From the NCBI RefSeq assembly GCF_964188315.1, contig NC_135660.1, positions 79,670,001 through 79,734,000 of the forward strand: DNA of 64,000 nt, given 5' to 3'. Positions 6,063 through 62,008 of the stretch are shown one piece after another; position 1 is the first letter of the stretch; every line of letters begins with the position of its first letter. This DNA is from Podarcis muralis (Eukaryota). Below the pieces are notes generated by a model. That model was not told the DNA's origin. It saw nothing but the letters and a program-made list of their open reading frames with translations, and made no database searches. A program made the translations under genes and the position numbers.

Positions 6063-6436
6063 TTAGAATTCACAAATGACTAACCACTCAAGTGGGCAGC
6101 CTCTGTCATGCCATTTGCCATCTTGATGCATTTCTACACAGTTCTCGTTGCCAAGATTATTTGGTTCTCCTGGGGCCCAGTTAGAGTAGCCAATGACGTC
6201 GCCATTCAGGTACTCAAACCTGCCTTCTGTCGCCATGTCATTGATCCCAAGGACTGCTCTTCTGTTATACCAGGTCACTATTTTTTGCAGGGCGCTGTTC
6301 TCTGCCGCATTCCTTGGGGAGGCAAGTGCGCCACCCATGCGCAAGCAGGTCTCACGCGCAGCATCATAATCACCTCTGGATCCATCTGTTTTGAATACCT
6401 TCTCACCAACCATCACGCCGTTGGGGGCAAGGAGAA
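6063..6436 (-). CDS. Gene 1 exon: C-type lectin CRD
   Basis: Acceptor ctctttccag; LLAPNGVMVGEKVFKT..WAPGEPNN..ENC..WHD..C..CEF*; four canonical Cys. Confidence 0.95.
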
Positions 6437-11915: not shown

Positions 11916-12892
11916 TGTCTGGATGTATGGTCTAAAATGGGGACAGAAACAAGCACAATGTCATTAGAAAAGAAGACAACTTAAACTCTGGTCACATGCA
12001 TACCATACACTGAAAGCACATTTCCAGCACATGGTTTTCCCCAAAGAATCCTGGAAACAGTAGACTGTCACCCACAGAGCAACAGTTCCCAACACTGTTA
12101 AGAAACTACAGTTCCCACAATTCTTTTTAGAGACGTGTGCTCTAAATGTGCTTTAAATTTATGGTGTGGGTGTGACCTTTATCCTAATTAGCAGCTTCTG
12201 ATTTTAAGAAGGAGATGGACAATATTTGACAGAGAATCGGAACAGATATGGATTTTCAGGATTGTGATTTCAGGTTCTGATCTGGAAAGACAAGGTTCAG
12301 TAAACATTGCTTGATGCCCTGTTGAAAGGGGAGAACTAGGGGAAACTGGGACCTTACAAAAGAGCAAGTTGGTGACCCAAAGATTAGAACAAGAGCCCAA
12401 AGGTCCTTACGTGTGGCACAAACAGGAAGTACCGCAAAGAATTAATTCATTGCTGAGTCAGGCGACGTGTGCAGTTTCAGCACCATAGTACACCAGCCTG
12501 TTGTGCCAGTCATGTTATAACTTGTGCCACCTGTTTTCTACAGCCTTTACATGGTAAGGTTTGGATAAAGAAAATAAAATTCTAAGTATCTGTAATATGC
12601 ATCGCTGCTTTCGTCAGCAATGCCCAAGTTTTGGATCCTGAAATCTCTCAATTGCATCCTTTGAGTTCTGTGTGTCAAAGCAAACAGGCTGTGATTCCCA
12701 CCCCACCCCCAGACAAATCATGCTGTCCTACAAGAAACTATTATCACTAGCAATAAGGGTTTACTTCCTACCCCATTCTTGTCCCTGAGTGCTAGCATGG
12801 TCAGCTGCAAAAGAGGGCTGGGCTCCTGTAGTTTTAATAGTCGTGCAAAAGTGGGGATTTCAGCAAGTGTAAATTGCATGCCCCTACCAGCT

Positions 12893-13640
12893 ATCAACAA
12901 CCTCAGGTATGCAGATGACACAACCTTGATGGTAGAAAGTGAGGAGGAATTAAAGAACCTTTTAATGAGGGTGAAAGAGTGCAAAATATGGTTTGAAGCT
13001 CAACATCAAAAAAATGAAGATCATGGCCACTGGTCCCATCACCTCCTGGCAAATAGAAGGGGAAGAAATGGAGGCAGTGAGAGATTTTACTTTCTTGGGC
13101 TCCATGATCACTGCAGATGGTGACAGCAACCATGAAATTAAAAGACGCCTGCTTCTTGAGAGAAAAGCAATGACAAACCTAGACAGCATCTTAAAAAGCA
13201 GAGACATCACCTTGCCAACAAAGGTCCGTATGGTTAAAGCTATGGTTTTCCCAGTAGTGATGTATGGAAGTGAGAGCTGGACCATAAAGAAGGCTGATCG
13301 CAAAAGAGTCCCATGGACTGCAAGAAGATCAAACCTCTCCATTCTGAAGGAAATCAGCCCTGAGTGCTCACTGGAAGGACAGATCCTGAAGCTGAGGCTC
13401 CAATACTTTGGCCACCTCATGAGAAGAGAAGAATCCCTGGAAAAGACCCTGATGTTGGGAAAGATGGAGGGCACAAGGAAAAGGGGACGACAGAGGATGA
13501 GATGGTTGGATAGTGTTCTCAAAACTACCAGCATGAGTTTGACCAAACTGTGGGAGGCAGTGGAAGACAGGAGTGCCTGGCGTGCTCTGGTCCATGGGGT
13601 CACGAAGAGTCGGACACGACTAAACGACTAAACAACAACA
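12893..13640 (+). mobile_element. Bov-B (RTE) LINE 3' ~750 bp with small internal deletion
   Basis: INNLRYADDTTL RT motif through ..HGVTKSRTRLND; a frameshift, and a deletion at ~13300 relative to the copy at 2081. Confidence 0.93.
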
Positions 13641-16097
13641 TCAGCAACACAAAGGTGAGGAAGCCCTGTCATCTGTTGCATCTGGCCACCCTACAGAATA
13701 CAGATGTATACTTTCTCCAATCCAAGTGAATGGGTGCGATTCCTTCCTATGCAAAAAAGTCTAACTTCTGCATCTCGGGGAATTGCTGAAGTGATGGTGA
13801 AATGCTGCCCTATCTGGGGCCTGGCTGCAACCCCTATGCATGCTTGCATGGGACTAAGTTCCACTGAGCACAGTAGGACCCTCCTTGTACAGAAAGAGTA
13901 CCAAGAAATATAGCACAGCCTCCTGGGGGCCCTGCAATATATGGTACCTGTTCCCACCTTCCCTTCACTCCCGTTATAATCACAAGCATTTTGCTAATCT
14001 ATACAGTAATCAAATGCATTTAGAGTATTTCGGTCCAATAAGTCCCTGTTGATTTTAGCACACTGAAAGAATAATATACAATCATTTATACCTGTTAGGA
14101 ATCTTTGTTTGGTCCATGTTTGGAGTTCATATCAAAAGTCCAGTCCCTTTGTAATTTCCGTTTTGTTCCACAAAAGTCTTAGCAAGACTAATTTAGGAGG
14201 CATTCAGGATTCCATTTATAGACCAAGGGTTATGTAACAAGAGCTCATGTTTCTTATGCAAAGCATTTTAACCATAAATATTTTGCTTCACGATCGTCAA
14301 ACTATCAAAGCAGGTCTGTTGCTTTCAAGTGGGACTTCTCAAGAGCATGGTTTCCGGGTTCCTGCTATAGTCGCTGTTAATCCAAGAAAGCGAAACACAA
14401 AGGAAGTATTGTCCAGTGGTGGTAAAATACATGCAGAGAACAATGGAGCTTGCCACTTCAAAGTAAACAATTCAAAACAAATTGTTAACTCATTACTGAA
14501 CAATTTACAGTACTTGTTAAGGAGCAATTACTTAAATCAATCCACTGGTGGTAGCAAGCACATAATATTTGTGGCTTGGTTTTCTGTCTTGGGGGTGCTC
14601 CACTAATGGTACTTATAGTCACTTATAGTGGGAGTGTCAGGCAGTAAGCAAGTATTGAGATGATGTATTCCGTGTGATTTCTAAAATTCTGAATTTTACA
14701 GTGGTTAAAGACCCAGGCTTGACCTTGTTATCATTATTTTGAGGAGCAAATAAATATATGTTATTTAAGTGATTAATTAAAATCCATTTCCTGGGAGCGG
14801 CCCAGATACTGATCACATTCTTATGGAGAAGAGATTGTTAACTGTGTAAAACTGGTATGATAGCATTTGGATAGCATTTGCACTTGTAGGCAAACTAACA
14901 CAACAGTGCTATAGTAGTCAGAGGTGACAGTACCAAATATGGTTTTTATGATAACTGGTCTCCATTTCTTTCATTAATTCCTCGTCCAAAGAACCTAGAC
15001 TACCTTCTGTTTACTGTACTTTTTGGACAGGTATGTTAGACCAAACATCTTGATATTCCAGATTTTCTTTGTTTAGACTGACTCTTTCTAAAGTTTAAAG
15101 GTTGTGCTAATTTTATAAGTATGTTGTCATAATCAATACTATATGCTTGGCTTTTGTAGATAACATTCTTTCAAAAGTTTGTAATGAGGATACACAGTTC
15201 ACATGTATTTCCTCTCTCCCAATGTGATCTTTAGAATGTTTTGATTGTTTTATGCCATGCTTACTGTTTCCTAACATTTTGCACTTTTTGAAACAAAAAA
15301 TTGAAGATCTCTAAGAGCTTTACTGTATAAAGTGAACAATTGTACCCCCTCCCCTTTCTAATATCATCTAAAATATGTGAATATGCACAATATGTACACT
15401 GTTAATCTATTCTGTTGTTTAAACTTACTCAAGTCTTTGGCTCCTTTTCATACACCTCATGCTTGTAGCTCTCTCTAATATTTCTCAATACCTACCATGG
15501 AACACAGAACTCCAAATGAGGGACAATGCCAGGATGTTCAAGACTTGAAATCTGAAAATCCTTCAAAATGCTTTCTGAGGGTTGGAATTCCAAAAAGTGT
15601 GTGTGTGTGGGAGGGGGGGATTGTTCCAAGGTTCAGAGTTCCAAAAATTCCTGAACACTTGTTCCAGGGATAAAAATTCCAAAAAAGGTATGACAGCTGG
15701 AATTCTGAAAAATGCTGAAAACATGTTTCAATTAATCTGAAAATGCTAAAAAAAAAAAAAAAATAATCTGAGGGTTGGAATTCTGAAAATACCGCAAAAT
15801 GCCTTCTGAGAGTCAAAATTCCAAAAATTCATGGGAAAGTATTCTGCATGTAGCAATTCTGAAAATTCACAAAAGGTTTAAATTCATTGTGATCCGATAA
15901 AAGCTGGAAAATCTCTTTTCCCAATGCTGGCTAAGGGCATATATGTTCTCTTAAAAATCATTTATAAGCTATTAAGCTGAAAAGTTGAAAGAGCAGAAAG
16001 AGCGCCCAGAATATTATTATTTTGCGATCAATAAGAAATGCTGTTCTCTTCGTGTCTGTGTTGGGAGGTTTCCCTGCTGTAACCATTGTTTGCTGTA

Positions 16098-20136: not shown

Positions 20137-20507
20137 TCAAAATTCGCACATTATTAACCGAGCCACATTGCATGAGATGTCATTCCATTTGCCATCTGGA
20201 TACAATTCTATGCAGTCCTCTTCCACCCCATTGGGTTCTTTTGGTGCCCAGTTTGAATATTCCATTGTTTCACCATTAAGATGCTTGAAGATGCCTTCTG
20301 TCTCCTGGTCATTCATTCCAAAAAATACTTTTCTTCCCATTTTTGCAGAGAGTTTCAGTGCAGCATTGTTTTCATTTTCATTCCTTGGAGAAGCAACCTG
20401 GCCACCAAAATGGTTACACGTCGCTTTTGAAGTCTCATAATCACCGTCATCTCCATTAGTCACAAATAGTTTCCCTCCTACTCTTGTGCTGTTTGAGAAA
20501 ATGTAAC
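20137..20507 (-). CDS. Gene 2 exon: C-type lectin CRD
   Basis: Acceptor cattctag; YIFSNSTRVGGKLFVTNG..EPNGVEEDC..WND..CEF*. Confidence 0.95.
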
Positions 20508-23497
20508 CTAGAATGGCTAACAGACAATACAATCAAAATTAATTATTTCAAATGTGCTTTCGTCATTAATAGCCCAAATTTAGGACCTGGGCCTGATTCA
20601 TACAGCAATTGCTGTACATTTAGTTGCTCAAATGAGTGGTTTGGTTGCATTAAGGACTGTGTAATGTCAGAGGATGATATTAATGGCAACCCGTACATCT
20701 TTCATCAAGGTACACAAACAACTAGCTTACCTTTCTGGGTTTTGCTTGCAGTCAGCTGCAAAGCCTTCAGCTCTCCTTGTAAATCACTGATTTGAGTTTT
20801 GAGCAGCTCAAGTTCTAAAAGGCAAAAGGACAGTATTGTTCTTGTTCTGTTTGTGTTAAAGTATAAAAGATTGCAAAGGAATCTGCTTCAGAAGTGACAA
20901 ATCTCAAATCCACCATTGCCCTTCTCCCTGCCCCATTCAGTTTCTCATTGTCTTAATTCCAGAAGAGTGTTAGTCTTTGCAGCAAAATCAGCAGTGTCTT
21001 GGCAGAACTTAAAGACTAGCAAATGTAATGTCGCATGCATTTTTGTGGTTCAGAAGAGCTCACCTCATCAGATGCATAAAGTTGATAGTGTACACAATGA
21101 ACCATCCATCAAGGAACAAGGAAACTATTTTCAAACTATAACAAATCAGGTCAGGTCTGGTTCAGACTCCACTCACCTCCCTTACCTAACCATAGTGATG
21201 TTGAGGCCACAATCATAGCAGGCTGAAAAAAATGGCACCATACTTCCTTGCTCATCGAATCATAGAACCGTAAAGTTGAAGAGACCACAAGAGTCATCTA
21301 GTCCAACCCCCTGCAATGCAGGAATCTTCTGTCGAAGGTGCGACTCAGCCCCACAACCCTCAGATTTAAGAGTCTCATGTTCTACAGGCTGAGCTATCCC
21401 AGCTCATGTGTATGTGTATGAATTGGTAGTGTCACATGGGACTTTATATGAGACTGTTTGCTTCCATCAACTAGAATCTGCTTGAATCAATAAATGAAAC
21501 ATTTCTGTTGTTGATTGAAGTAGCAGTCCTAAAGAATCATGGGAGTACAAGGCCTCAGTTTAACCAGACTGATTTTGCAGCTGTAATCAATTGGCCATTT
21601 TAATTAAGACAGATATCTAAAGCAACTCTAGACTTTAATACACTTATATTTCAATAAAGACATTTCCTCTCCCATCGTTTGGAATGTTTTACTTTTCGCA
21701 TGGAACCACAAAGTTTAGATTCTTATTAGCCTTGTGTATAGAACCCAGACAAATTTCAGTAAAATCTCTTGGCTTGTGTGTGTCTGCAGTTGTCCACATC
21801 CCTTACCTTTTCCTCCACATTCACCTTTCTGACCACTTTCCCCTTTAAGGCCAGGAGGCCCAGCTTTTCCTGGGAGTCCCTGCATTCCTCGTAAACCTGC
21901 CATTTAATCCAATGGATAAACAGAAAAAGATGAACTAATGAGCAACATAATGCATGGGCATTCTTAGGTTATAGTTAAACATATGAATACACCAACAAAT
22001 AGTTATTTGAAAGGGCATTCTGCGGGAAACTGGGGGTCTTCATTGTTGCCCAAGTGTGCTCTGTGTTCCACCTCTTTGGAGGAGAGTGACCAGCAGTCTT
22101 TTCTAGTTGTGTTATTTGAGATCCCTTTTTTGTGGAGAACCACAGATGGAACATGGGGCCTCCTCCATGCCAGGTATGTGCTTTGATTTCCTCCTAATAC
22201 TGAGAGAGCAACCAAGATGATCAAGGGTCTGGAAACCAAGCCTTATAAGGAACAATTGAGGGGATTGGGTCTGTTAGCCAGGGAAAGAGGAGACAGGGGA
22301 GATCTGGTAGCCATCTTCAAATATCTCAAGGGCTGTCACATGGAAGATGGAGCAAGCTTGTTTTCTCCAGCTCTGGAGGGTAGAACTCAAACCAATGGCT
22401 TCAAGTTACAAGAAAGGAGATTCCGGCTAAACATCAGGAAGAACTTTCTGACAGTAAGAGTTGTTCAACAGTAGAATGGAATCCCGAGGGAGGATGTGGT
22501 CTCTCCTTCGTTGGATGGTAATCTGTCATTAAGATTACCGCCTTAAGAGCGGCAAGCCACACTCCCTGAGCCAGCCGATAGGCTGGCCAGGGTATGACGC
22601 GGCAGAAGATTCCCCCTGTATGCGTGAGGCTGAGAGCCAGCCTCAGTGCGGGAGTTGGGGGCGGGAAGCCCGCAAACCCACCTCCTCCCTAGGGTCAGAA
22701 ATGGCTTTAGTTGATTTAAAGACTATTTACAGAAATACTGTAAAATTAATGAATGTTAGAAAAATGTTGGAATGAAGTTATATGGCTTTAGTAGAAATGT
22801 TATAAGGAATTAAGTATAAATAGATTACTAGAGCATTAAAGGGAGAAATAAGGTTAAAATGTGTTAAGATAATTATAGGATAGAAAATAGAGGAAGATGG
22901 AAAGGAATTGCTGAAACAATCAATAGACGTGGAATACAAAAAGGGAGGTGTGAGGAGGTCGTGGAAATTAGCGAAAGAAGGATAAAATATTGAAATTGGA
23001 CTGTGTTTTAAATGGTTTTTGTTTTGTTTTGTTAGTTGTATGTTAGTGTTTTCTTTTTTATTATATTGTATTGTATTATTGTATGTTTTTTTCTTTTTTG
23101 GTTTTTTGTAGTGTTGTGTTCAATTTGTTGGAAAACTAATAAATATTATTATATAAAAAAAGAGGAAATGGCTTTAGTTGAGATCTTTGCATTGCAGGGA
23201 GTTGAATATATAGCCCTCAAGGTCCTTTCCAACTTTACAGTTCTATGATTTTATGACTACCATTGGATAACTCTTGGAAATTCCTTATGCCATACCTTGC
23301 TCTCCCTTTTCACCTTGAGGACCTTCCTTCCCATCTCTTCCTGGCAGTCCATTGCTCCCAGGGATGCCTGGCAATCCATTGCTTTCAGGAATAACCATGC
23401 AGGCTGGCACTTTCTCTTCACAGTTGCATTGCTCCGGATCTGACATTCTCACCGATGACGCTCCCAGCACAAGAATGCAGAGGACATGGCGTTGCAT
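20137..23497 (-). CDS. Collectin gene 2: mannose-binding-lectin-like, 4 coding exons, predicted 248 aa
   Basis: Exons 23296-23497 (202 nt), 21807-21896 (90 nt, GLRGMQGLPGKAGPPG, like [17 protein letters not shown]), 20731-20814 (84 nt neck) and 20137-20507 (371 nt CRD, EPN/WND). The sum of 747 nt is an open frame. Confidence 0.9.
20731..20814 (-). CDS. Gene 2 exon: 84-nt neck
   Basis: ccttttag/AA..AAAG/gtaagc; encodes ELELLKTQISDLQGELKALQLTASKTQK. Confidence 0.92.
21253..21405 (-). mobile_element. tRNA-Lys-headed SINE with CR1-type tail
   Basis: Minus strand ..gatagctcagcctgtagaacatgagactcttaa..; tail ..gcagggggttggactagatga..ttctatgattc. Confidence 0.8.
21807..21896 (-). CDS. Gene 2 exon: 90-nt collagen exon with MASP-type motif
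   Basis: atggcag/GT..AAAG/gtaagg; encodes GLRGMQGLPGKAGPPGLKGESGQKGECGGK. Confidence 0.92.
22200..23255 (+). mobile_element. CR1 LINE 3' end, interrupted by two younger insertions
   Basis: ORF2 C-terminus MIKGLETKPY..FRLNIRKNFLTVRVVQQ; the CR1 tail resumes at 23165-23255. Confidence 0.9.
22715..23164 (+). mobile_element. L1-type 3' fragment nested in CR1
   Basis: 17-bp TSD gaaatggctttagttga at 22698-22714 and 23165-23181; FKDYLQKYC-like ORF end, AATAAA and A tail. Confidence 0.85.
23296..23497 (-). CDS. Gene 2 exon: signal peptide + Cys region + collagen start
   Basis: Acceptor gccttag at 23514-23520, ATG at 23497; [48 protein letters not shown]; donor CAAG/gtatgg. Confidence 0.85.
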
Positions 23498-30742: not shown

Positions 30743-31119
30743 TTAAAACTCACACACTATTAACCGTCTTTCTGTGCAGGACTTGTCATTCCACTTGCCA
30801 TCCTGAAATATTTCAATGCAGTCCTCCTTCCCGCCAGCATTGTTTGGCTCTTCGCTTGCCCAGTTGGTGTAATTGACTTCATTGCCGTCCAGGTGGGCAA
30901 ACGTGCCTTCTGACTGCAAGTCGTTCATTCCCAGATAAGCTGCCTTGTTGTGACGAGCAACTATTTGCTGGATGGCTGCGTTCTCCGCAGAATACCTCGG
31001 AGAGGCAAGCAGACCACCGGCCTGGAAGCAGGTAGCTTTGGCTGCCTCAAAGCTGCCTTGGGAGCCGTCGGTTTTGAATAGCTTCTCACCAACACTTCGG
31101 CCATTTGGGAATAAATGAG
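30743..31119 (-). CDS. Gene 3 exon: C-type lectin CRD
   Basis: Acceptor ttcctctag; the frame is open to TAA at 30743; EPN/WND and four Cys are present. Confidence 0.95.
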
Positions 31120-34100
31120 CTAGAGGAATAGAGAATCAGTTACAGCTGCGTTAAGTTTTGGCTTCGTTGAATGGTACTTGATTAGTTATTCCTCCTCCTG
31201 GGCAGTCTGGGAAGGTTGTACAAACGGAAGCTCTAGGTTGAGCTCTAGGTTGGGCAAAAGATTCTATGATCCCTGATCCTTTTAAGAGGATATAGCAGGG
31301 ACTGAACTGGAGGTCTTCTGCAATGAGAAGCAATGAGAAGGTATGGTCTGATCCCTTTACTGGAAAAGGATTAAACACATCCTTCTTCCACACCAACTTG
31401 CATCTTGCAAGTTGAAAGAATCACAGAACTTGATGGAAAATGTATTTTGAGTTTACATTTTAGCTAGCTAATGGGTGGCACTCTCTACCACTTTTGTTGA
31501 TTCATGCTGATGCTTAGTTTATTAAGATGAAGTTTGGGTAGTGTCTTTTAGTTTGAACCTTACGAGTTCACATTGATATTTAAGTAATCTTTAGTGTGGG
31601 GACTTATCAGACTGCACTGTCTCTCTGCTGGTTTGAAATGCCCTTAGGAAATGTAAACAGCTGCTAAATCTGCTGTGACTTTAACTATATAATTATGTAC
31701 AAATATGAATGGGAATCAGGTTTGTCATAAATCATACAATTAATGCTTTGGTCATATGAAGCTTAGCAGTTCTTCCCGTGTCTAATCCCCACGTCCAAAG
31801 TCAGAATCAGGTTTAACTCAAAGCTAGCAAATCAGAACTAACAACCTTATTAGCAATGGAAAGCCAACATAGTTACCATTTTAGACAGTAGGGGCCCTCC
31901 CTCAGCTGGCAGTTCAACTTTCAAATAAAATAAAGTAACACCACAGTGAAGAATTTGTTAGCAGCTGTGTGTTTGTTGTGGCGTGACAGACAGTGCATTC
32001 AACTGCCCAAACCCACCTTCAGGGCTGTTTTAGATACAGTCAGTAGCAGGGCCGGATTTAGGTAAGCTACTGAAGGTAATGGGACCTTTTATATGTTCAG
32101 CTGTCCTTTGTCAACAACAAATTGTCACTCTTTTTTTGTGTTGAATAGATGCTATATGGTAATTTATGGACCTAATAGATATCTAAAGCCATTTGTACAT
32201 AACAAAATATGTATTTTATCAAAGTTCTGTAATTGTTGAACTGAAATACAATTAAGAAGTTTATCTTACATTTTCGAAATGTACATCCAGTTTTTTCTTT
32301 TAATTTTTGGGGGGACCCCCAAGAGAGTAGGGTCCTAAGCTAGAGTTTGTTTAGCTTATAGATAAATCCGGCACTGAGTAGTATCAGCTGAGCTTCCTTC
32401 CTAACAAACTAATCTATACAGAAGGAGATTGTTTTGCCATTTTGGTTGGGGAACCTTCAGACATGCAACCCTGCCCTTGCCACTTGAAGTGGTACAGTCC
32501 TGAGAAAGCTTACAATCTGTTGATTTTATAAATTATCTCTTAGAGCTTTAACTCCAAGAGCCAGAGCAGCTGGATTTAGGCTGCATCATCATATTAAAAT
32601 CAACATGTAGGTCCCTCTGCAGGACACTTGATAGATAACTTCATGCATTTCACAGAAAATGATATCTGATATCCACATTCTCGCCAGTCCGCTCCATTTT
32701 CTCACCATTTTGGTTCCTGAGCATAGCGTTTCTCAGAGCCTCCACTTGTTCTTTCAAACGGGCCACTTCAGATTCCAGTTGCTGAAGTTCTAAATGATGT
32801 AACAATAAAGACAAAATTCTTAATATTGAGATGTAAAGCATATACTGAGAAAAGCATGACAATGAGAGGAACCACCTCTGTGATAAGCCACAAGTGCAAC
32901 GTCAAAAACCTCTGGATTCTCCGCCTCTGCTTCTCAGTTTTTGAAAAAGTACTTTAATAAACACAGCAAGTAATGCAGTTCAGAAGTCAAAGCTGCTGAT
33001 TTAAAAACAAGTCAGTGACCCTCAGTTGTCTAACAAAACTATTTTTGCCTAGATTCAGCTGGACAGGAGAGGAAATTGTTTGGTTCACATTTTCATGCAA
33101 GCCTACCTGATTAACATCTCCAAAACCCACACACTAACCAAAACTGGAATCCTATCAATCAGCTGTCCCAGAGCTGCTGATTGAGGCCACCTCCACTAAA
33201 TAATTTGTTCTCAGTAGGATTCTGGTTTCTCTTTATTCTATTTATTTAGTAAACTTTTCCAAAAACACTAATTGGAGTCAAAATTGAAGCAAAATGGGTA
33301 CAATGGGTGAGTATGATCAGCCTTAAGTCAGCTCAATAAATAGATTCCAGTTTGTTTGTTTTTGTTTGTTTGTTTTTAAAAAGGACTATGGGAATGCAGT
33401 CCCGGCTGCTTTGTGCAAATGCTGCAAATCACCACCACCACCTATTAGGAACTTGGACCCACATATCTTGTTTGAGATGTGATTGTTCTCACCCTGATTG
33501 GGGCGCAGGTAAAGGATTTTGCCAATGTGGTTTCTCTAACAGCACTCTTATGGAAACATGATACTATATCAGGCATAGGCAAACTCGACCCTCCAGATGT
33601 TTTGGGACTACAACTTCCATCATCCTTAGCGAACAGGACCAGTGGTCAAGGATGATGGGAATTGTAGTCCCAAAACATCTGGAGGGCCGAGTTTGCCTAT
33701 GCCTGTACTATATCCACCAAGTATGCTGTTATAGGAATGACATAGATGGAGGCATTTAGGAAGACTTCCTAATAGGTGTAGGATGAACTGCATCAGCAAC
33801 TGAGTACCTATAGAGAGGGGAGTCTTAAACTACTGACATTATTGTTGTATAATGAGCAAAAAAGCCAACCATTATTCCAAACTGACTGGCATAAAGCCTA
33901 TTGTGAGCATTTCTTGGTGACACTTGGGGAAATACAGTGTGGTCAAGTCTTGGAGCCCCTGACCATGGGAATGCTCCTTTTATAGGTTTACAAAATGTGT
34001 ACACTTAGAATTTTTTGAAACTGAAACAACTAGGTGACCCTGGTCTACCTAGGTCTTTGTACTGACAACCCTCTTCTTTCAGTGACGGATGCTCTCTGTG

Positions 34101-36062
34101 GCACAATGGGTCGGTGCGTCTGGCTGTTTACTGGGAAGGTTGGTGGTTTGAGCTACTCAGGGATTGCTGTGGGCAGGATCCCTGTATTGCAGGGGGTTGG
34201 ACTAGATGACCCTTGGGGTCCCTTCCATCTCTACAATTCTATTATGAGTTTATCAGATCAGGCTTTCCAGAGTCAGGTTTTTTGAAGAGTCATCAGGAAG
34301 TGGCATTTCCCCTTTTGGGTTGTTTTTGTTCTTTGGTCATTTGTTACTAGTTGGTTTAAATGTGCCCTCTTGTGGTATAATAGAGACATAACCAAAATAA
34401 ATGTGCAGTTAGTTTAGAAGTGATGGATTTTCTCATCAGTTGTCACAGGGAAACGTCGCCACGAAGTGAGATCGTTCTCTGTAATTATTTGTCAGAATAA
34501 ACGTGCTCCCTCACGGTGCAGATACAGCCACAGAAAAGGCAATGTTTGTTTGCTTTAGGTGAAATTATATCTAGATTTCAGATGGCTGTAACTTTACTAC
34601 TACCTGGTGAAGGAAAGTGAAACCATTGAGATGATGCCTTGTACTTTGCAAATACTCTTACGTGAAAGCAGGTTGCATTCAGTGGTTGTCTCTTCAGTGC
34701 CCAGAATGATTGTCCACCAGAGAAGAAAGATGGCAGATTAGCAGGTAGCTAATCTATGAATAGGCTCCTACCTCTTGCTCCATGGTCTCCCTTTGGTCCT
34801 CTTTCACCTACTAGACCCCGATCTCCTTTATCGCCTTGAGGCCCAGCTTTTCCTGGAGGTCCCTGAATTCCTTGGGGTCCTAGACATCATGGGATTAAAT
34901 GAACATCAAGAAACACCAGGAATAACAGGAAGTAAGAAATACGAATCCATGGTCAAGTTCTACAAGAACATCCGTTGCATGGACAAACATTTAGATCCTG
35001 ATCAAACCTTGAGTGGCTGGACCAATTATGGTGGTGATGTGCTCATACTTTGGCATCAAATACAGAAATACTTGTTTTGAAAAGTTCTGACTAATGGCTA
35101 ATGGCTTATTTTACACTGAGCCACAAAGCTCACCTCAGATTGCCTTATTGTAAGAATCGGCAGCCGTATCCCATCCCATCAGGGCTACCATTGATTCCCT
35201 AGATACCAAACCAAAGCCAAGAGGGGTATCCCCAAAAAGTGACAATTAGGATAGCGTCAGGGGTGGCAGAAATGACAGGGTCCGGTTTGGAGACACACAC
35301 GCAGTGGTAGCATCCCAATGCTGGTCACTTCGCTCCCTCCTCAGAATGTTTCCCAGTCGTGGTCCCTCCCCTCTTGCTCCAATTCTAAGGCGACGTGGGA
35401 GAGTACAAACGCAGGCAGGCAATGATCTGGAATTTAAAATGGCCGACTGCGCTGCAGAGCTCCACCAGGCAATGGGCCTTTTAAAGCAGTGCTGCCTAGT
35501 TGGGCAGGGCAGGGGCCAATGTCCAGATGGCCAGCAAGTTTCTGCCCTGGCGAAGCAGCCGCTGGCTGGGCTGCCACGGTCTTCAACTCTGATGGGTATC
35601 TGCCCCCATTCCCAGGGCATAGGGGCTGGTCAGTGTGTGCGGTGGGGTAAAGAGGCTGGAGTGCAAGGGGCCATAAACGTCGCCCCAGGGAAGGCAATGA
35701 GCAGCCATTGCTGACCAAGGTCCTTACTACAAAACAGTCCTCTTTTTAGGATTGAAGTTGTTGAGCATTTTTTAGGATTTTACCCTAGGAAATAAATTGC
35801 CACAGGGGCCGGATTAAACTGACCGGCGGGCCAGATTAGGCCCCCAAAACAGACTTTGGACATGCCTGCACTAAGCCCACCCCTGACAAGTCTTTGTAAC
35901 TTTACCTTGATCACCCTTCTCTCCTGCGGGACCCGGCAATCCATTGCTCCCAGGCATTCCAAGAATGAAAGGGCACGTGTTGTCCTTGCCTGCAGTGGGG
36001 ATTGTGCTTTGTGAGAATGCCACCGGCAAGATAAGGAAGCCAAAAGTCCAAAGGAATCCCAT
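30743..36062 (-). CDS. Collectin gene 3: short-collagen collectin with SP-D-like CRD and MASP-type motif, 4 coding exons, predicted 241 aa
   Basis: Exons 35906-36062 (157 nt), 34772-34879 (108 nt collagen), 32706-32789 (84 nt neck) and 30743-31119 (377 nt [30 protein letters not shown]). The sum of 726 nt is an open frame. Confidence 0.9.
32047..32376. mobile_element. hAT-like MITE
   Basis: TIR cagggccggattt/aaatccggcactg; no clear TSD. Confidence 0.7.
32706..32789 (-). CDS. Gene 3 exon: 84-nt neck
   Basis: catttag/AA..AATG/gtgaga; encodes [28 protein letters not shown]. Confidence 0.92.
33570..33705. mobile_element. Palindromic hAT MITE
   Basis: Same family as 27424; exact TSD tactatat. 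Confidence 0.92.
34772..34879 (-). CDS. Gene 3 exon: 108-nt collagen exon
   Basis: gtctag/GA..AGAG/gtagga; encodes [36 protein letters not shown]. Confidence 0.92.
35906..36062 (-). CDS. Gene 3 exon: signal peptide + single Cys + collagen start
   Basis: tttctag/GC ATG; [43 protein letters not shown]; donor CAAG/gtaaag. Confidence 0.85.
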
Positions 36063-41028: not shown

Positions 41029-41405
41029 CTAAAATTCACAGAGTATTAGCCTCTTTTCCCCGCAGGCCCGGTCGTTCCACTTTCCATTCACATAAACCTC
41101 TACACAGTTCTCCCTGCCCTTTTCGTTATTGGGTTCTCCCTGTAGCCAGTTGGAGTAAACGATGGCATCGCCATTCAGATACCTAAATTTCCCCTCCGTC
41201 TGGATATCAGTTACCCCAAGAAAGACCGACTTGTTATGCTGAACAACTATCTGTTGGACAGCTGTGTTCTCCGCAGCATTTTTGGGGGCGGCCAGCTGGC
41301 CCCCGGCTTGCAGACACTTTTGCTTCAGGTCATCAAAGGTGCCTTCGTAGCCGCTGGTTACGAATACTTTGTTACCGACAATTCGCCCTCCCGGGAATGC
41401 TGCAA
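41029..41405 (-). CDS. SFTPD: SFTPD CRD exon
   Basis: Acceptor tgttttag; [27 protein letters not shown]. Confidence 0.95.
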
Positions 41406-43455
41406 CTAAAACAAACAAAGGGAGTGGGCGTCAGGTTGATAGTCAGCCACTGTGTTTTGCGAAGCCAATAAATGGATGGCAACCTCTGCTATTTGCAACC
41501 CATAGGAATCTTGGATTTGGATAATGTTTTTAGCAACAAGATGATTAATGCCATCCTATGCAGAAGCAAGATAAGGGACGCGGGTGGCGCTGTGGGTTAA
41601 AGCCTCAGCGCCTAGGACTTGCCGATCGAAAGGTCAGCGGTTTGAATCCCCGCGGCGGGGTGAGCTCCCATCGCTCGGTCCCAGCGCCTGCCAACCTAGC
41701 AGTTCGAAAGCACCCTCAGGTGCAAGTAGATAAATAGGGACCGCTTACTAGTGGGAAGGTAAACGGCATTCCGTGTGCTGCGCTGGCTCACCAGATGCAG
41801 CTTGTCATGCTGGCCACGTGACCTGGAAGTGTCTGTGGACAGCGCTGGCTCCCGGCCTATAGAGTGAGATGAGCGCACAACCCTAGAGTCTGTCAAGACT
41901 GGCCCGTACGGGCAGGGGTACCTTTACCTTTACCTTTATGTAGAAGCAAGAGAACCCTCATAGCACCTTAGCTGTGGCCACAAAGGTGACAATTGAAAAT
42001 TGATGGTGCACCTGGCTCTGGCCAGGCTACAGCACATTCAAAAGAATATTTTATTCACCGAATTTTCAAAATGTTGCAATTATTTTGCAGGAAAGGAAAA
42101 TGGATCTTTAAAAAGAAGGTTCAGAAAATGCTGCAAAAGACTAGGGATAACCTACACAATTTATCCCTGTGCTTATTGAGCTTGTGCTGCAGTCATAATC
42201 TTGCAAAGACAATGTTGTTGCTGGTTCTCTAATGCTACAACAGGGGGATGATGCATGCATGTGCTGGAATCTAAGGGTTACAATGAACATCCCTGTGCTA
42301 TCACATATAATGTGCCCATAGACCTGTGTGTTGGTACTGGTTCTTTGTTAAGGGGCCAAACGGACCGAGAAAGATTGCAAAAGACGGTTCACAATGTTTC
42401 TGTTACATGCAGCATTTACCTTTTTGATATTTGGAGAAACTGGCTTGCAAGGCTCTTAGCTGCCCCTCTAGGTCACTGACTTGTTTTTTCATAAGGTTGA
42501 CCTCTGAGAAATAATAAAATGATCATGATCTGCAAGATTCAGTACTGTAGTAATATGCGGTAAACAATATATTGCACACAGTGTGGATGTGAAACGTTTT
42601 GTTAAACCAAATGCCACCTCTCTCTCCAACTTCCACCCACCCAGAAACTAAAAATTGCCAGGCAATCCAAATGGCACAACACAATAAACATGTTGTTGTC
42701 ACAGTCAATCAATTGCTGCCATAATTAATACATTCATCATTCATTCATTAATTCTATGGAAATTTAAATAATATTATGCTATATTTGCTACATAATCTCA
42801 GTGTAGAATCAAATGGAAATGAATTTGTACATTAGTGAATATTGGGTGGTGATCTCTTACTAGGTCTGTTTTGCTTGTGTGTTGGTGTATGCATGTGTGT
42901 ATTAATGGTATGAATTAATTATACGATTAATGGTTCAGTGGTATTAATGTCCATCAAGGGTAAACGTTTGCCCTTTTTTGAAAGAAGCCTTTGTTTATAC
43001 AGATACATGTATCCATCGCTTGATCCCTCTTTCAGACCTTCCTGTTAAGGCCCAAACTAGAATAAATATTCCCACCCCACCCCCCAGAATGGTCTGGAAT
43101 TAAATACACTCTCAATCGAGTTGTGTGATTTTTTAAAAAAAAGTTAGCTCCACCCTGATTGCTCACTTAAACTTTCCCTCAATAATCAGAGTTACAAAAT
43201 TCACATGGATTGCACCAACTAAAAAGGGCACAGCAACTTAAAAGACAAATTTTGCTCTAACACTTTTAATGCATCACTTTTAACATCAACAACAAAAGGC
43301 TACCCCTCCTTACCTGAGAGACCGCTGTCACCCTTGGTCCCTTTGTCACCTACAGATCCTTTATCTCCTTTGGATCCAGGAGATCCTGGTTTCCCCACTG
43401 GCCCTTGGGGACCAGTCGCTCCTTGTAATCCTATGGAGAGAATAATAATTAATAA

Positions 43456-43502
<47 letters not shown>

Positions 43503-46500
43503 ATTATTTATACCCTGCCCATCTGGTTGGGGTTCCCCAGTCACTCTGGTCAGCTTCCATCACATTTGAAAACATAATAAGATGTCTAACATTAAAAACT
43601 TATTGATACAGGATTTTTAAAATAAAAAAAAACCCTAGCAAGTTAGTTGGTAGGTGGCTTCTGTTTTCCTATGCATGTTAATATCTGATAAACAGCCATA
43701 GCCAATTGGTTTAAAAGGCTGTATGCAGGAGCAGTGTGAACAAATCACCCATCTTTTCTTTTCGTTAACCGGAAAGGAGTGTCAGAGGTTGACATGGAGC
43801 AGAAGCTTGGCATTACACCTGGCACCCCTGGGGCAGAGCCCTTCTGCACTGGTAAGGCGAGTTGCCATTTTAAATTTCCTACAGTGACATGGAAAGTTCT
43901 GGAGCCTCGTGGAGTATTGAAACAGCAGTCCCGGGGGGGGGGGGGAGTGAGTACAGACATTTTCAATGCTCAGTATGCCCTGGAGTGATGCTTTATTCGG
44001 GGTATTGTGGGGAATTTAAAATGATCATTTTTTCATTGCAGGTGGAGTCCCACTGACCTGGGAGGGCATTCAATCCTAGGGCAATTTGCTCCTCAAATTC
44101 AGACCTGAATCTGAGGAGTTCCAGTTTCCTTAAAAAAAAAAAAAGTCATCTAAGTTAGTGGCCAGCTGAAAATCCCTCAGACTAACTATGCACTACATCA
44201 AGAAGTTATTTCTGTTGTCTCTTCGGAACCTTTCTCTTTTTTAAAAAAAAATAATTTTTATTAAATTTTCCATTTTAACAATTCAATCAAATCACATTAA
44301 ATATTCCAAATTATAAAAATACATATCATATAGTCTGAATATTCTGCCAAATTATAAATTTTTATTGGGGCCTCCCATGCTTCAAGTTTGGTGGGGCTCT
44401 GATCATCTTATATCTCTACTGCCTTGAGTTTCCAACAGTTCTTTTAATTCTTCCTGTTGTTACCTTTCCTTTGTTCATGGCCTCTGAGTTGTTTCCACAG
44501 GCAAGTTGAAGTAAGCAATGATATGCTTCTGTGTGAAATTTGTCTGCCTATTGTTTGCTGTATATCCTCACACGCTGGTGTTTATGCCGAATTAATCCAA
44601 CTCTTTGGAACCTTTCTCATGCCATCAGAATGTTTGTTCAGATGCACCTTTTCGTCCACATCACTTACCTCTTTCTCCCACATCTCCTTTCGCTCCCTTT
44701 TCGCCCACTGGGCCTCTGTCGCCTTTGGGCCCAGCCACACCTGTGTCACCTTTGGGACCTTGGGCACCAGTAGCTCCTTTTGAACCTACAGAAATATTGA
44801 ATGGGGAGGGGAGAATCAACAAAAATGGAAGGTACTTTGTAATTATGACAAATGCAAAAGTAGGTAAATAGTTTCAGCTCAGCCCTAGTTTGTCTGTCTG
44901 TCTGTTGTTGTTGTTCCTATGCTGCCCTTCATCCAAAGATCACAGGGAAGTTTACAATATAAAAGCACAAAAATACACACAATAGTAACAAAATACCAGC
45001 CCACCTATGCGGTTTAAAAGGTCATAGATCAGGCATAGGCAAACTCGGCCCTCCAGATGTTTTGGGACTACAACTCCCATCATCCCTAGCTAACAGGACC
45101 AGTGGGCAGGGATGATGGGAGTTGTAGTCCAAAACATCTGGAGAGCCGAGTTTGCCTATGCCTGTCATAGATGGTTTAATTAGCCAAAGGCTGGGAGAAG
45201 AGGAATGCTTTTGCCTAAGATATGTAACAAAAGTGCCAGGCAAGCCTCTCTGGAGAGGGCATTACACAAACAGGGAGCCTGGTCTCATGTTGTTGCCCTC
45301 TGGGCTTCTTGTAGCGGAGGCTCATGAAGAAGGGCTTCAGATGATGATTGCACTGTCTGGCTCAGCTCATATGGGAAGAGGCAGCCTACATCTTAGGTTA
45401 GACATTCTCACAGAAATGATAGCTCCAGTGTTTATATACTATGTTTTGTACTGAGGATATGATAGTCACAATTTTATATCTAGGGGGTAGTCCTGTTAGT
45501 CTGGTATACCAAAACAATGATGAGGCTATGGTACTGCAGAGCAGGGGTAGTCAATATGGTTCCCTCCCAAGGTGAGCTACAACTTACACCATCTTTGCCA
45601 TTGGTTTTGCTGAATGGCGCTGATGGGTTCCAACAACCTCCCATGTTGACTACCCCTGCCTTAGAAACTAGCAAATATATCATAGCACAAGCTTTTCTGG
45701 ACTAGTGTCAGATGCATTTGATGAAGTGGCCTTTATCACTACATTTTATAACTTGCATGTTGCCAGAACATGACTTCAGAAGCTGGCTGTCACAGATCAC
45801 AATCTTTTTGTGACCTCAGCCAATTGCCTAACAATGGGAGTCAAGCTTGAGAGCTGTCAGCCTATGATGTATTTGCTTGTTCTTTCATTGGCATCCACGA
45901 TGGATGTACAGTGGTACCTCTGGTTAAGAACTTAATTCATTCTGGAGGTCTGTTCTTAACCTGAAGCACCACTTTAGCTAATGGGGTCTCCTGCTGCCGC
46001 TGTGCCGCCGCTGCACAATTTCTGTTCTCATCCTGAAGCAAAGTTCTTAACCCGAGGTAATATTTCTGGGTTAGTGGAGTCTGTAACCTAAATGTATGTA
46101 ACCTGAAGCGTATGTAACCCGAGGTACCGCTGTATATATAGAGGGAAACATCAGAGGTATGGGCATTTTATGGTTGCTTTCTCCACTCACATAACATTTA
46201 TAACTTGGAAACTGTACCATACTAAGTATCTTGACAACAGGGTGGATGTGAACATTTAAAATCTGTGACTGGGATCCAAAAAAGCTACTTAGGCATGCTT
46301 AAGGACTTGGACTGACATTTAGGTCTTTTTACTTCTTTTGTTGGATGGTAGGTCTCCGGGGATAACACAAATGGCTGTTTGAGAAGCAGAAGCCCCCAAC
46401 CCCACTGGGTGTGCAGAAGTAGTTGTATGCTCCTTTGGATCCTGGCCACTGTGGTATATTGAACCCTCTTGCAGAAATCCAACTATTTAGCACTTAGGAT

Positions 46501-47442
46501 TACCTGTTTCTCCCTTGACGCCTTTTTCACCTTGTGGGCCATTGTTGCCTTGTGCTCCAGAGGGGCCGACGCTTCCTGGAGGACCCTGCAAACCTCTGAT
46601 TCCACGCGGTCCTACTCAAAAGAAAGCGGTTTTGTGAGCAGGCAGAGATATACACCAAAGGGGGAAGGTCTCTTGTGATGAGTTGCAGTGCATCAGGGGC
46701 TCCTGGGCCTTAGAACTGGGAACACTGAAATGTGCATGCCATTGTCCCAATCTGGTATGCCTTCAGAGTGGTGGAGGACGCTGTCCTAACACTAGTGTTG
46801 AAATAAGTTTCAACTGGAAGTCTGGTGAGGTTCTATACATGGACTGGGGTATGGGCACCATCTTGTCTTTCATCTCAGGCAGCAAAATGTTTTGGGCCAG
46901 TCCTGTACTGGGAGCAAGGGAAGAGCACCTTGGTGGGTTTGTACTCTCGTCCAGGGAAAATGTTTGATGCCATCAATCGGCAGGATGGCCCTCTAACAAG
47001 ACTTAGAGACAGATGTGGATAAAAATATTAAAGAAGTTTGATTTCTTCTAATAATATCTAGCTTTTGTTGAATTTGATGCAATACAATTCCATTTAGTCA
47101 ACAACACTCCTTACCCATTGATCCAGCATCTCCTTTGGGTCCTTGCTCTCCTTGGGTCCCCTTTTCTCCTTGTGGTCCAGCTGGTCCCATTTTTCCAGGA
47201 GGACCAAGAATTCCTCTTGGTCCTGCCAACCCTGGCATTAAGTGGAAGAATGAAAAGTGGGGTTATCTTAATGATAAAGCTTACATATGTGAGGAATGCA
47301 ATACATAATAACCCAAGGGAGAAGTTTATTGAGAGGTGGGCCTTGTTTTTACTTTTCTGGAATGACAGTGGAAATGATATTTCCCCTTTTAACTTATGCA
47401 CGATACTATAGGGTCTTTGTTATGTTGTCCCTTTCTCCTTTC

Positions 47443-47508
<66 letters not shown>

Positions 47509-49322
47509 CTGCATGGGAAGCAAACATGTTTGATGTACAGCTTAATGGTTTTGGCTACATATTGTTATAATATCATATTAAAATCTTTAAAAAGAGGGGG
47601 AAAGTGGTTTACTAAGTGGGTGAACAAGAGGCACTTGTGATGAACACAAGGCTGATAAATTACTGGCAAATCAGTTAAATGAAACGATCTCATGCCAGTT
47701 TCAGTTTAAAGATGCTAAGACAAGAAGCAATGCATAGATTCCAGTCTTGGGTCATCATCATTGCTAAGTTATCTAGGGTTGCCATATTTCAAAAAGTGAA
47801 AATCTGGACGGAGAAGTTGTTGAGCTTTTTTGGCCATACAGTGGTACCTTGGGTTAAGAACTTAATTCATTCTGGAGGTCCGTTCTTAACCTGAAACTGT
47901 TCTTAACCTGACGTACCACTTTAGCTAACGGGGCCTCCTGCTGCCACCGTCGCCACACAATTTCTATTCTCATCCTGAAGCAAAGTTCTTAACCCAAGAT
48001 ACTATTTCTCGGTTAGCGGAGTCTGTAACCTGAAGCGTCTGTAACCCGAGGTACCACTGTAGTTGCAAAAACGACACTGCCGACATTGGTTGCCATATTT
48101 CTGTCTTGACATTTAGCCGATTTCCACCCAGACACTGCTTCTGACTACAGTATTCCAGGTATGTCTGGGAAATTCTGGGTGTATGGCAATCCTAAAGTTA
48201 GCCAAGGCAGCTACATTCAAGGTGGCTGTGGCTGTTGCCATACATCCACCAGATGACATTCCCACCCCCTCCCTATATTTGCTTTCTCCTCTTCTGCCTT
48301 TTCCTTCTCTGTTTGGCATCATGTCCCTCTTAATCCAGGAGAAATGCAGAACATCATGCGGTCTTGCACTTCTAGCCCTCACTGTTGATGGACCTACACC
48401 GTAATCTTTACAGTATCAATTTGAAAACTTAAGATTCATTTTTATATTGATGTCATGCAACTTTGCTTTTATGTTGTCTTGGTAGAATTTTTATGCTGTT
48501 TGCATGTCCAGGCGCTGTGACTCTGCTGCCCCTACCCAGTGGAGAAAAACCAGTCAAGACACATTCTTTTAAGTTGAATAAGAGCACTGCTTTATTGGTT
48601 GCAGATGTAAGAGGTTTGTCATAGGCACTGGGTATAACAACCAACCTGCCTGCTGGAAGTATCTTCTCCATGGGGTCTACCCTGAGGCAAGGAGGTCCTA
48701 TGACTTACATCAAATAGGTATATCTCTGCCAGGATCTCCACTATGGCTCTGGCCCTCACCTGGGAATCTGGATAGAAGCATCTCCTCCAGTATCCTTTTA
48801 ACAGGATACCCCTTTCCCTTGAAAGGGCAGCAAGAGGCTTACAACCTCCCCTCCAACCAAGACTAAGGCTTTTACCTTCAGGTGGTGGTTTAGGCACTGG
48901 ATAAGCCTAAGTCATGGCCAGAGAAGAGGTTGTCTTAACATTGAAAACTAAATGATATTTATCACAAGGCAATGTAATTGGGGGTCATCATGAAGTTGCA
49001 TCATAAGCTGCTTTTGCTTAAATTAGGTGGGACTGCATGGTTTACTGTCTTTCCCCTCCTCCAGTGTGTGAATCAAAAGCTGATCCTCAAAGAACGGGAG
49101 CTCTTAGGAAGTCACCTTTTCCATACCTTGTTCTCCCTTGTCTCCTTTTGGTCCTTGGACTCCATCTCTCCCATTTATCCCTGGTAACCCTTTCTCAGCT
49201 GGTCCACATACAACCAGTGAGCAGGCATTCCGATCCAAGTTCTGGATAACTTGCGGTGAGCCCTGGAACGATGCTGGTGAAAATTGCGAAACCAACACAG
49301 AGAGCGTTAGAAGCACCAGCAT
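41029..49322 (-). CDS. SFTPD: Pulmonary surfactant protein D (collectin gene 4), 7 coding exons, predicted 371 aa
   Basis: Exons 49127-49322 (196 nt; [17 protein letters not shown] vs human NACTLVMCSSVESGLPG), collagen exons 47115-47231 (117), 46504-46611 (108), 44669-44785 (117) and 43314-43430 (117), neck 42420-42503 (84) and CRD 41029-41405 (377; [11 protein letters not shown] identical to human SP-D). The sum of 1116 nt is open, and the architecture matches mammalian SFTPD. Confidence 0.88.
41575..41936 (+). mobile_element. Sauria SINE, full length, different subfamily 3' part
   Basis: Starts gggacgcgggtggcgctg; TSD tatg(c/t)agaagcaaga at 41557-41571 and 41937-41951; the 3' part (ggcctatagagtgag..ggcccgtacgggcagg) differs from the other copies. 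Confidence 0.93.
42420..42503 (-). CDS. SFTPD: SFTPD neck exon (84 nt)
   Basis: tttctcag/AG..AAAG/gtaaat; encodes [28 protein letters not shown]. Confidence 0.92.
43314..43430 (-). CDS. SFTPD: SFTPD collagen exon D (117 nt)
   Basis: ctccatag/GA..TCAG/gtaagg; encodes [39 protein letters not shown] (human ends GDKGAKGESGLP). Confidence 0.92.
43450..43625 (-). mobile_element. L2-type 3' tail
   Basis: (AAAT)n followed by taccctgcccatctggttggggttccccagtcactctgg, as at 7851. Confidence 0.75.
44236..44450 (-). mobile_element. L1-type 3' UTR fragment
   Basis: The minus strand ends ..gtgatttgattg..aataaaaaattattttttttt aaaaaa, resembling the tail of 8336-9445; boundaries approximate. Confidence 0.6.
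44669..44785 (-). CDS. SFTPD: SFTPD collagen exon C (117 nt)
   Basis: ttctgtag/GT..AGAG/gtaagt; encodes [39 protein letters not shown]. Confidence 0.92.
45030..45164. mobile_element. Palindromic hAT MITE
   Basis: Exact TSD tcatagat. Confidence 0.92.
45909..46132. mobile_element. Tigger-like MITE family A
   Basis: TIRs plus TA TSDs. Confidence 0.9.
46504..46611 (-). CDS. SFTPD: SFTPD collagen exon B (108 nt)
   Basis: ttttgagtag/GA..ACAG/gtaatc; encodes [36 protein letters not shown]. Confidence 0.9.
47115..47231 (-). CDS. SFTPD: SFTPD collagen exon A (117 nt, carries PGKMGP)
   Basis: aatgccag/GG..ATGG/gtaagg; encodes [39 protein letters not shown]. Confidence 0.92.
47447..47497 (+). repeat. 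(CT)n microsatellite
   Basis: Directly visible. Confidence 0.95.
47839..48059. mobile_element. Tigger-like MITE family A
   Basis: TIRs plus TA TSDs. Confidence 0.9.
49127..49322 (-). CDS. SFTPD: SFTPD exon: signal + N-terminal CxxxxC + 7 Gly-X-Y
   Basis: Acceptor cccccag at 49339-49345, ATG at 49322, donor CAAG/gtatgg. Confidence 0.88.
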
Positions 49323-56740: not shown

Positions 56741-56901
56741 NNNNNNNNNNNNNNNNNNNNNNNNNNNNNNNNNNNNNNNNNNNNNNNNNNNNNNNNNNNN
56801 NNNNNNNNNNNNNNNNNNNNNNNNNNNNNNNNNNNNNNNNNNNNNNNNNNNNNNNNNNNNNNNNNNNNNNNNNNNNNNNNNNNNNNNNNNNNNNNNNNNN
56901 N
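56741..56901. other. Assembly gap (161 N) between L2-like tails
   Basis: Run of N; the left flank is (AAC)n(AAT)n plus an L2 tail. Confidence 0.99.
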
Positions 56902-61667: not shown

Positions 61668-62008
61668 TTAGGGGATAAAGGAAAATTCACAAACAGTGAG
61701 GAGCTTCTCTTTGCATGATGTAGAGTGCCACTTTCCATCTTTGGCAGCTTTTGTACAGTTCTTAGATCCATCAGAGTTGCTTGGTTCCCCAAATGCCCAG
61801 TTTGTGTATGCGTCAAAATTGTGGCCCGTAACATAGGCCGATTTCTCATGCCTCTTCAACACACTCTGCAAAGCGTTGGCCTCAGCCTCCTTCTTCGGAG
61901 AAGGAACATGACCGCCAGCGGCGAGACAGGTGGCACTGAGCGTTTCGAAGTCCCCTTCACCAAGATTTGTGGTGTATAACCTTTCACTGCCAGTTCCAAA
62001 ACTGCGAG
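61668..62008 (-). CDS. Gene 5 exon: degenerate CRD
   Basis: Open frame RSFGTGSERLYTTN..CLAAGG..YTNWAFGEPSN..C..GKWHSTSC..CEFSFIP*. Confidence 0.88.

Follow-up and report, generated by a model that had tools for sequence, protein, structure and literature searches.

A candidate MASP-binding site retained in the collagen stalk of a probable lizard surfactant protein D

Collectin biology sets the lung collectins SP-A and SP-D apart from the complement activators, namely MBL, CL-K1/L1 and the ficolins. To our knowledge, SP-A and SP-D are held not to use MASPs, a picture that rests on mammals. Whether it extends beyond mammals is the question raised by a stretch of DNA of 64,000 nucleotides from the lizard Podarcis muralis (contig NC_135660.1, chromosome positions 79,670,001-79,734,000), which we refer to as the window and in which positions are counted from its first letter. 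One of its collectin genes, here called gene 4, has the architecture of SFTPD, the gene of surfactant protein D (SP-D), and encodes in its first collagen exon after exon 1 a motif of the kind by which MBL and ficolins bind MASPs. We regard it as very probable that gene 4 is the SFTPD orthologue and that its motif is an ancestral retention, both taken together. We lean, with more caution, towards the fuller statement that gene 4 encodes a lizard SP-D whose retained site, hydroxyproline (Hyp)-Gly-Lys-Met-Gly-Pro, would be competent for MASP binding.

We built the gene model by locating Gly-X-Y runs and open frames and then splicing at landmarks. Spliced from the window sequence, gene 4 is a complete collectin gene of seven coding exons in which every intron is GT-AG. 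Its product of 371 amino acids, with 58 uninterrupted Gly-X-Y triplets, is 100% identical over the whole length to P0162, which NCBI names 'uncharacterized protein LOC114597103 [Podarcis muralis]' and which is encoded on OZ076959.1 of assembly GCA_964188315.1. All exons lie on the minus strand. Exon 1 (49127-49322, ending at a GT donor and identical to P0162) contains the start codon, the signal peptide, the first seven triplets and, directly before the collagen, a segment with two Cys (NACSLVVCG) that aligns with mammalian SP-D N-termini. It is followed by four collagen exons: exon A (47115-47231, 117 nucleotides, triplets 8-20), which bears the motif, is bounded by AG/GT and is in phase 1 with both ends within a Gly codon; exon B (46504-46611, 108 nucleotides); exon C (44669-44785, 117 nucleotides); and exon D (43314-43430, 117 nucleotides). 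The gene is completed by an 84-nucleotide exon for the coiled-coil neck (42420-42503) and by the exon for the C-type lectin domain (41029-41405), which includes EPN and the stop codon. Pfam recognises Collagen, Surfac_D-trimer (PF09006) and Lectin_C in the product, PF09006 corresponding to the neck and discriminating weakly, as it also matches MBL-like proteins. An earlier, sequence-only reading of this DNA had described an SFTPD architecture with 58 triplets, four collagen exons and an 84-nucleotide neck, all of which were found; the one correction concerns exon B, which has 12 triplets and not 13. Within the intron that separates exons 1 and A there is a (GA)n microsatellite (47444-47554), which appears as ERERER in translation.

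The motif (47182-47199, minus strand) reads GPP-GKM-GPA. Lys79 (codon AAA, 47191-47193) takes the X position of triplet 12, the Pro in the preceding Y position is expected to be Hyp, and a further Pro opens the next triplet. The definition of the MASP-binding motif of MBL and ficolins is given in two published studies (PMC2592599 and PMC2856262), and mutagenesis identified the Lys as its sole essential residue, with an aliphatic or small polar residue allowed after it but not Glu, and with Ala tolerated for the following Pro (PMC2856262). Met after the Lys occurs naturally in mammalian MBL-A, as in GPPGKMGPP of Vicugna. In gene 4 this is the only canonical site of the protein, and the only other X-position Lys stands in triplet 50, in exon D, in the non-canonical context GPV-GKP-GSP. 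When X and Y residues were shuffled within the gene 4 collagen domain, P-G-K-[AILMV]-G-P arose somewhere in the domain in 0.95% of trials but at triplet 12 in 0.02%, so that the motif exceeds what chance would give; it is conserved across sauropsid orthologues as well (see below). A block of Lys79 by hydroxylation or glycosylation was considered and rejected on position, since the Lys is in X and the lysines that are hydroxylated and glycosylated in collagen are those in Y (PMC2856262).

Where the Lys sits says something about where it came from. Counted from the first collagen Gly, it falls in triplet 12 in lizard, snake, turtle and crocodile SP-D, in the MBLs of Xenopus tropicalis and of a caecilian, and in an Anolis protein that NCBI names 'mannose-binding protein' but that our tree (see below) places in a clade of short paralogues and not in the MBL clade. 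Reptile MBL and a lungfish 'SP-D' have it there as well if one counts through a two-residue interruption, which in reptile MBL is a GQ kink. The sequence-only reading had placed the motif at the same position as in MBL, and the amphibian and reptile MBLs agree with this. At the DNA level, exon A is in register with the one collagen exon found in each of two neighbouring genes, gene 2 (exon at 21802-21897, minus strand, reading GLPGKAGPP) and gene 3 (exon at 34764-34880, minus strand, reading GPPGKAGPQ), with AAA for Lys in the same column of all three. Exons B, C and D align in this register too, and in their homologous columns GKM of exon A is replaced by GSV (GPPGSVGPS, with Ser for Lys), GDT (GPKGDTGVA) and GKP, respectively. 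Judged from these alignments, one unit was copied in register to give the four collagen exons of SP-D, of which only exon A keeps the site intact. The site itself is, on the same comparison, inherited and not new, because it shares its exon column with the neighbouring paralogues and its triplet with MBL. A recent origin of the motif by gene conversion, with the MBL-like neighbours as donors, was rejected: exon A differs from their exons throughout and has Met in place of their Ala, and the Met form is common to turtles and crocodilians. In the snake SP-D P0073 (Laticauda), the homologous columns of all four exons (triplets 12, 25, 37 and 50) have an X-position Lys, reading GKM, GKV, GKV and GKP, so that a chain may have as many as four quasi-sites, at intervals of about 13 triplets.

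A motif that is MBL-like may also suggest that the whole gene is, in other words that gene 4 is an MBL or an MBL-like paralogue with an independently expanded stalk rather than an SFTPD orthologue. The lectin exon speaks against this, as its matches to solved structures reach 168 bits for human, rat and pig SP-D, 134 for conglutinin, 127 for SP-A and at most 108 for MBL, a difference of 60 bits in favour of SP-D over MBL; the EPN and WND of the SP-D-type lectin domain are both present. A search of representative proteins with the lectin exon returned mostly multi-lectin-domain giants and supplied P0073 and a few others. When this full-length snake orthologue was used as the query, the first matches were proteins from squamates, turtles and crocodilians to which NCBI gives the name SP-D, followed by about 90 mammalian SP-Ds with 50-57% identity and near-full coverage. 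The stalk is similarly telling: in register, or shifted by one triplet past the missing triplet, X/Y identity between gene 4 and mammalian SP-D amounts to 27-29%, and at most other offsets to about 7-16%, so that an expanded MBL would have had to build up independently a four-exon stalk that is colinear with mammalian SP-D triplet by triplet.

A comparison of whole architectures points the same way. Mammalian SFTPD, including bovine conglutinin and CL-46, shares with gene 4 the seven-triplet N-terminal exon, the four collagen exons, the 84-nucleotide neck and the lectin exon, as well as the two N-terminal Cys, EPN, about 54% full-length identity and a stalk of 59 uninterrupted triplets against 58, exon B of gene 4 being one triplet shorter. 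MBL, on the other hand, has about 19-20 triplets, often interrupted by GQ and encoded in two exons, whereas the 58 uninterrupted triplets of gene 4 are spread over five. What MBL and gene 4 have in common is the Hyp-Gly-Lys-aliphatic/Met-Gly-Pro motif with its X-position Lys at triplet 12, an EPN-type lectin domain and, as the two Cys of gene 4 suggest, the assembly of trimeric stalks into oligomers through an N-terminus that contains Cys.

Phylogeny gave a less decisive answer. In a careful maximum-likelihood tree of the neck and lectin domain (62 rows, 150 columns), gene 4 belongs to a sauropsid SP-D clade (99/96) that mirrors the species tree, mammalian SP-Ds form another clade (100/97), and MBLs form a separate one (94/94), outside which gene 4 falls in the best tree. 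Weighing against SP-D orthology, the tree does not settle the backbone among the SP-D, paralogue and MBL clades. A tree constrained to unite mammalian and sauropsid SP-D, which the best tree does not do, comes at a cost of 1.1 log-likelihood units (approximately unbiased (AU) test, p 0.18), one that forces sauropsid SP-D together with MBL, as an expanded MBL would have it, at a cost of only 0.7 (AU p 0.38), and neither grouping is rejected. The lectin-domain tree neither contradicts nor proves the SP-D orthology of gene 4, and the case for orthology is therefore carried by the colinear stalk, the similarity scores and the order of the genes.

Gene order can be read from the tandem array to which gene 4 belongs. 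Five lectin exons lie within the window, in a minus-strand tandem array of collectins that continues beyond the window start. There, a true MBL gene (P0388, with GFPGKAGPP and a GQ kink) lies 0.45-5.8 kb before position 1 on the same strand as gene 4, and beyond it is an SP-A-like gene whose first exons are SP-A-like and are followed by kinked collagen (10001-15351 and 23394-25351 of L004, respectively, within OZ076959.1, 79,654,202-79,669,552). The array thus comprises at least seven collectins, which follow one another as gene 5, SP-D (gene 4), three paralogues, MBL and SP-A-like. This agrees with SFTPD-MBL1-SFTPA, which we take to be the order of the mammalian locus, and is a further point against an expanded MBL, as is the fact that a separate true MBL, grouping with bird and mammalian MBL, is present in the same array. 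Taken with the evidence above, an expanded MBL seems to us very improbable, in spite of its MBL-like motif and the low cost of the forced grouping. The assignment to SFTPD, and not to an MBL with a stretched stalk, that had been made from the letters alone is backed by architecture, lectin scores, stalk register and gene order.

If gene 4 is SP-D, one may ask how far the site extends across SP-Ds. We aligned 96 full-length SP-D-type proteins and computed per-triplet statistics, with 24 sauropsid and 64 therian SP-Ds among them. GPPGKMGP, or a one-residue variant in which the Lys is kept, was present in 19 of the 24 sauropsid proteins: the Lys is kept in all sampled turtles, both sampled crocodilians, every snake and the majority of lizards. 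No more than three triplets of the sauropsid stalk are invariant, triplet 11 (GPP) among them, and the Met is kept in 21/24. The site is not specific to squamates; it is sauropsid-wide and was lost at least four times within squamates, by replacement with Ile in Anolis, Thr in Tiliqua, Asn in Rhineura and Gln in Euleptes; any constraint on the Lys is therefore not absolute. Birds are a separate case, as SP-D was lost in the avian lineage (PMC12077231), with which the earlier remark that SP-D is absent in chicken agrees.

Mammals present a different picture. None of the 64 therian SP-Ds has Lys at triplet 12, which reads Gly-Pro/Gln/Glu-X in all of them in contrast to Gly-Lys-Met in the lizard: in placentals the residue is Pro, or else Gln or Glu in primates and some rodents, in marsupials it is Glu, and conglutinin and CL-46 are also without the Lys. 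At the homologous place, Lys is found in MBL, in the sauropsid paralogues, in frog relatives and in the lungfish protein. The simplest reading of this distribution, and a well-supported one, is that the Lys would be ancestral for the SP-D lineage and would have been lost before the marsupial-placental split. Our protein searches retrieved no monotreme SP-D and no unambiguous amphibian SP-D orthologue, frog 'SP-D' entries grouping with the short paralogues or with MBL in the tree, and the loss can thus be dated only to before that split. An ancestral site lost in mammals is what the sequence-only reading had proposed, and retention in turtles, crocodilians and most squamates together with its absence from all therians fits this well; of the orthologue survey that it suggested, the reptiles mostly kept the Lys, while clear amphibian SP-D orthologues were not found.

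The loss of the Lys in mammals goes along with a second change in the same part of the stalk. An N-G-S/T sequon is present at triplets 15-16, three triplets from the former Lys, in 48 of the 64 mammalian SP-Ds. We take this to be the known position of the SP-D collagen N-glycan (human Asn70). Neither gene 4 nor 22 of the 24 sauropsid SP-Ds has a collagen-domain sequon, the only two with one being from Anolis (P0159 of A. sagrei and P0165 of A. carolinensis), in which GPPGIMGP, with the Lys lost, is combined with an N-G-S sequon at the mammalian N-glycan position. The collagen N-glycan is a mammalian trait rather than one that defines the SP-D family. Loss of the Lys and gain of the sequon would then have co-occurred independently in mammals and in Anolis, which is suggestive but not statistical. 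Several variants in this region deserve mention in their own right. Two SP-D-like paralogues of 290 amino acids in A. sagrei (P0196 and P0206) keep GPPGKMGP; the SP-D of Cercocebus (P0211) has an X-position Lys at triplet 10, two triplets before the ancestral site, in the non-canonical context GAAGKAGTP with no Hyp before the Lys and Thr after it; and wombat SP-D reads GPPGKIGLT at triplet 25.

Could such a site dock MASPs on an SP-D scaffold? In the arrangement we propose, the two N-terminal Cys would join four trimeric arms into a cross-shaped dodecamer, as in mammalian SP-D, and each arm would offer, at a distance of some 33 residues from the hub, three unmodified X-position Lys79 side chains. 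Arms would be bridged by a MASP dimer through Ca2+-dependent contacts between these lysines and the pockets of CUB domains next to their Ca2+ sites, as on four-stalk MBL. The outcome of docking might be target-regulated cleavage of C4/C2, constitutive activation or binding only. MASP binding is plausible because three substitutions sufficed to make SP-A bind MASP-2, at 36 and 104 nM, and this binding tolerated a changed site position and a changed stalk angle (PMC2856262). The engineered protein, SPA-KLP, resembles lizard SP-D in that a 'non-complement' lung collectin scaffold bears Hyp-Gly-Lys-X-Gly-Pro; it differs in being artificial and in activating MASP-2 constitutively, whereas the lizard site is natural and ancient, and in having the bouquet of SP-A in place of the longer arms of SP-D that form a cross (PMC2856262). 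On these grounds, binding of MASPs by lizard SP-D in vitro is what we would, on balance, expect, and physiological initiation of complement is a possibility that we hold to be doubtful.

A number of observations weigh against MASP docking on lizard SP-D. MASP binding is proven for MBL and is a prediction for gene 4, and our literature search found no binding or complement data for any non-mammalian SP-D. The arms of SP-D, which exceed MBL stalks about threefold in length, are splayed as a cross, and engineered SP-A activated MASP constitutively, without target control (PMC2856262). A true MBL is present in the lizard, as are at least two short paralogues that bear the motif, which means that SP-D is not needed for the lectin pathway. 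Finally, in the four independent squamate losses the Lys went and the Met and Pro-Pro stayed, and the conserved block may serve something other than a contact between Lys and CUB.

Some of these points lend themselves to the view that the site is an inherited relic, a leftover of an MBL-like exon that was duplicated into the SP-D stalk, with no protease role and with SP-D never binding MASPs in vivo; its persistence would be due to the slow evolution of Gly-Pro-Hyp-rich collagen or to helix stability. We consider this a real possibility, albeit not the probable one. It would account for the graded decay of the site from GKM to GSV, GDT and GKP in the in-register copies, for four losses of the Lys in squamates without loss of the gene, for flanking GPP and Met that are more conserved than the Lys, and it is in keeping with other motif-bearing collectins close by. 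It sits less well with a Lys that is kept in every sampled turtle and crocodilian and in most squamates, when the stalk is free to vary at most of its other X/Y positions, and with the decayed copies in exons B and C, which argue that inertia alone does not keep the site. In addition, a Lys in such a context is near-sufficient for MASP binding (PMC2856262).

It is also conceivable that the Lys site is functional for a partner other than MASPs, for example calreticulin/CD91 or another protein that has CUB domains or binds collagen. Several receptors are bound by collectin tails, and the calreticulin/CD91 collectin receptor is reported to use the same region of MBL. Conservation of the three-triplet block GPP-GKM-GPA, with a Met more conserved than expected if the Lys alone mattered, would be compatible with such a partner. 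However, mammalian SP-D engages its known tail receptors without a Lys at triplet 12, and no evidence for another partner came up in our analysis, for which reasons we rate this explanation as unlikely.

Returning to MASP docking as the reading we prefer, its furthest extension can be put forward only tentatively. Sauropsid SP-D might be a true initiator of the lectin pathway at mucosal and secretory surfaces, secreted or circulating with MASPs docked on Lys79, and complement-silent SP-D might be a mammalian innovation. The mammalian switch would then have consisted of the loss of the Lys and the gain of a nearby collagen N-glycan, a switch that Anolis would have partly repeated. As to expression, RNA-derived contigs (n=2) contain a spliced squamate SP-D orthologue of 369 amino acids that includes GPPGKMGPP, and RNA-labelled runs, irrespective of tissue, contain 0.25-0.63 of the gene 4 lectin-exon words. 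Proteomics of the femoral-gland secretion of the marine iguana detected three SFTPD-like proteins together with complement C5-C9 (PMC8143647), and squamate SP-D-type collectins are thus secreted outside the lung.

The remaining genes of the window illustrate the diversity of this array. Genes 1, 2 and 3 (6066-10259, 20140-23404 and 30746-35960, all on the minus strand) resemble MBL in having a short stalk and, in the case of genes 2 and 3, G(L/P)PGKAGP. The lectin-domain tree nevertheless places them in a sauropsid clade that includes frog 'SP-D-like' proteins (95/88) and stands apart from true MBL (94/94). These short SP-D-like paralogues share with gene 4 the tandem array, the strand and related lectin domains, but have one collagen-only exon where gene 4 has four, and in genes 2 and 3 Ala follows the Lys where gene 4 has Met. 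Their orthologues are inconsistently named by NCBI, as SP-D-like, SP-A-like, MBP-like or collectin-46-like. Gene 1, whose closest relative is a Zootoca protein of 263 amino acids with 83% identity, has WHD instead of WND in its lectin domain (6066-6470, minus strand) and an irregular single collagen exon (10137-10259, minus strand; GLPIPQGLQG...). The lectin exon of gene 5 (61683-61982, minus strand) has EPS for EPN and WHS for WND, with a deletion of 11-13 residues in the region of the sugar-binding loop and the longest branch in the tree (1.3). Between genes 4 and 5 lies a run of 161 N (56741-56901), either an assembly gap or a mask.

Sauropsid SP-D genes are already in public databases, many of them annotated as SP-D, and the avian loss of SP-D is published. 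Our search, which lay mostly outside subscription journals, found no paper on a MASP-type site in non-mammalian SP-D or on its loss in mammals. The lizard protein offers a natural counterpart to engineered SP-A and bears on how binding becomes regulated activation when the scaffold has four arms and a long stalk. Should binding not prove real, lizard SP-D would still be of use as a clear case in which a canonical motif does not suffice in its context. If binding is real, the split between 'complement' and 'surfactant' collectins would be a mammalian derivation, the SP-D stalk would have arisen by repetition of a protease-docking exon, and the avian loss of SP-D would have removed a possible complement activator.

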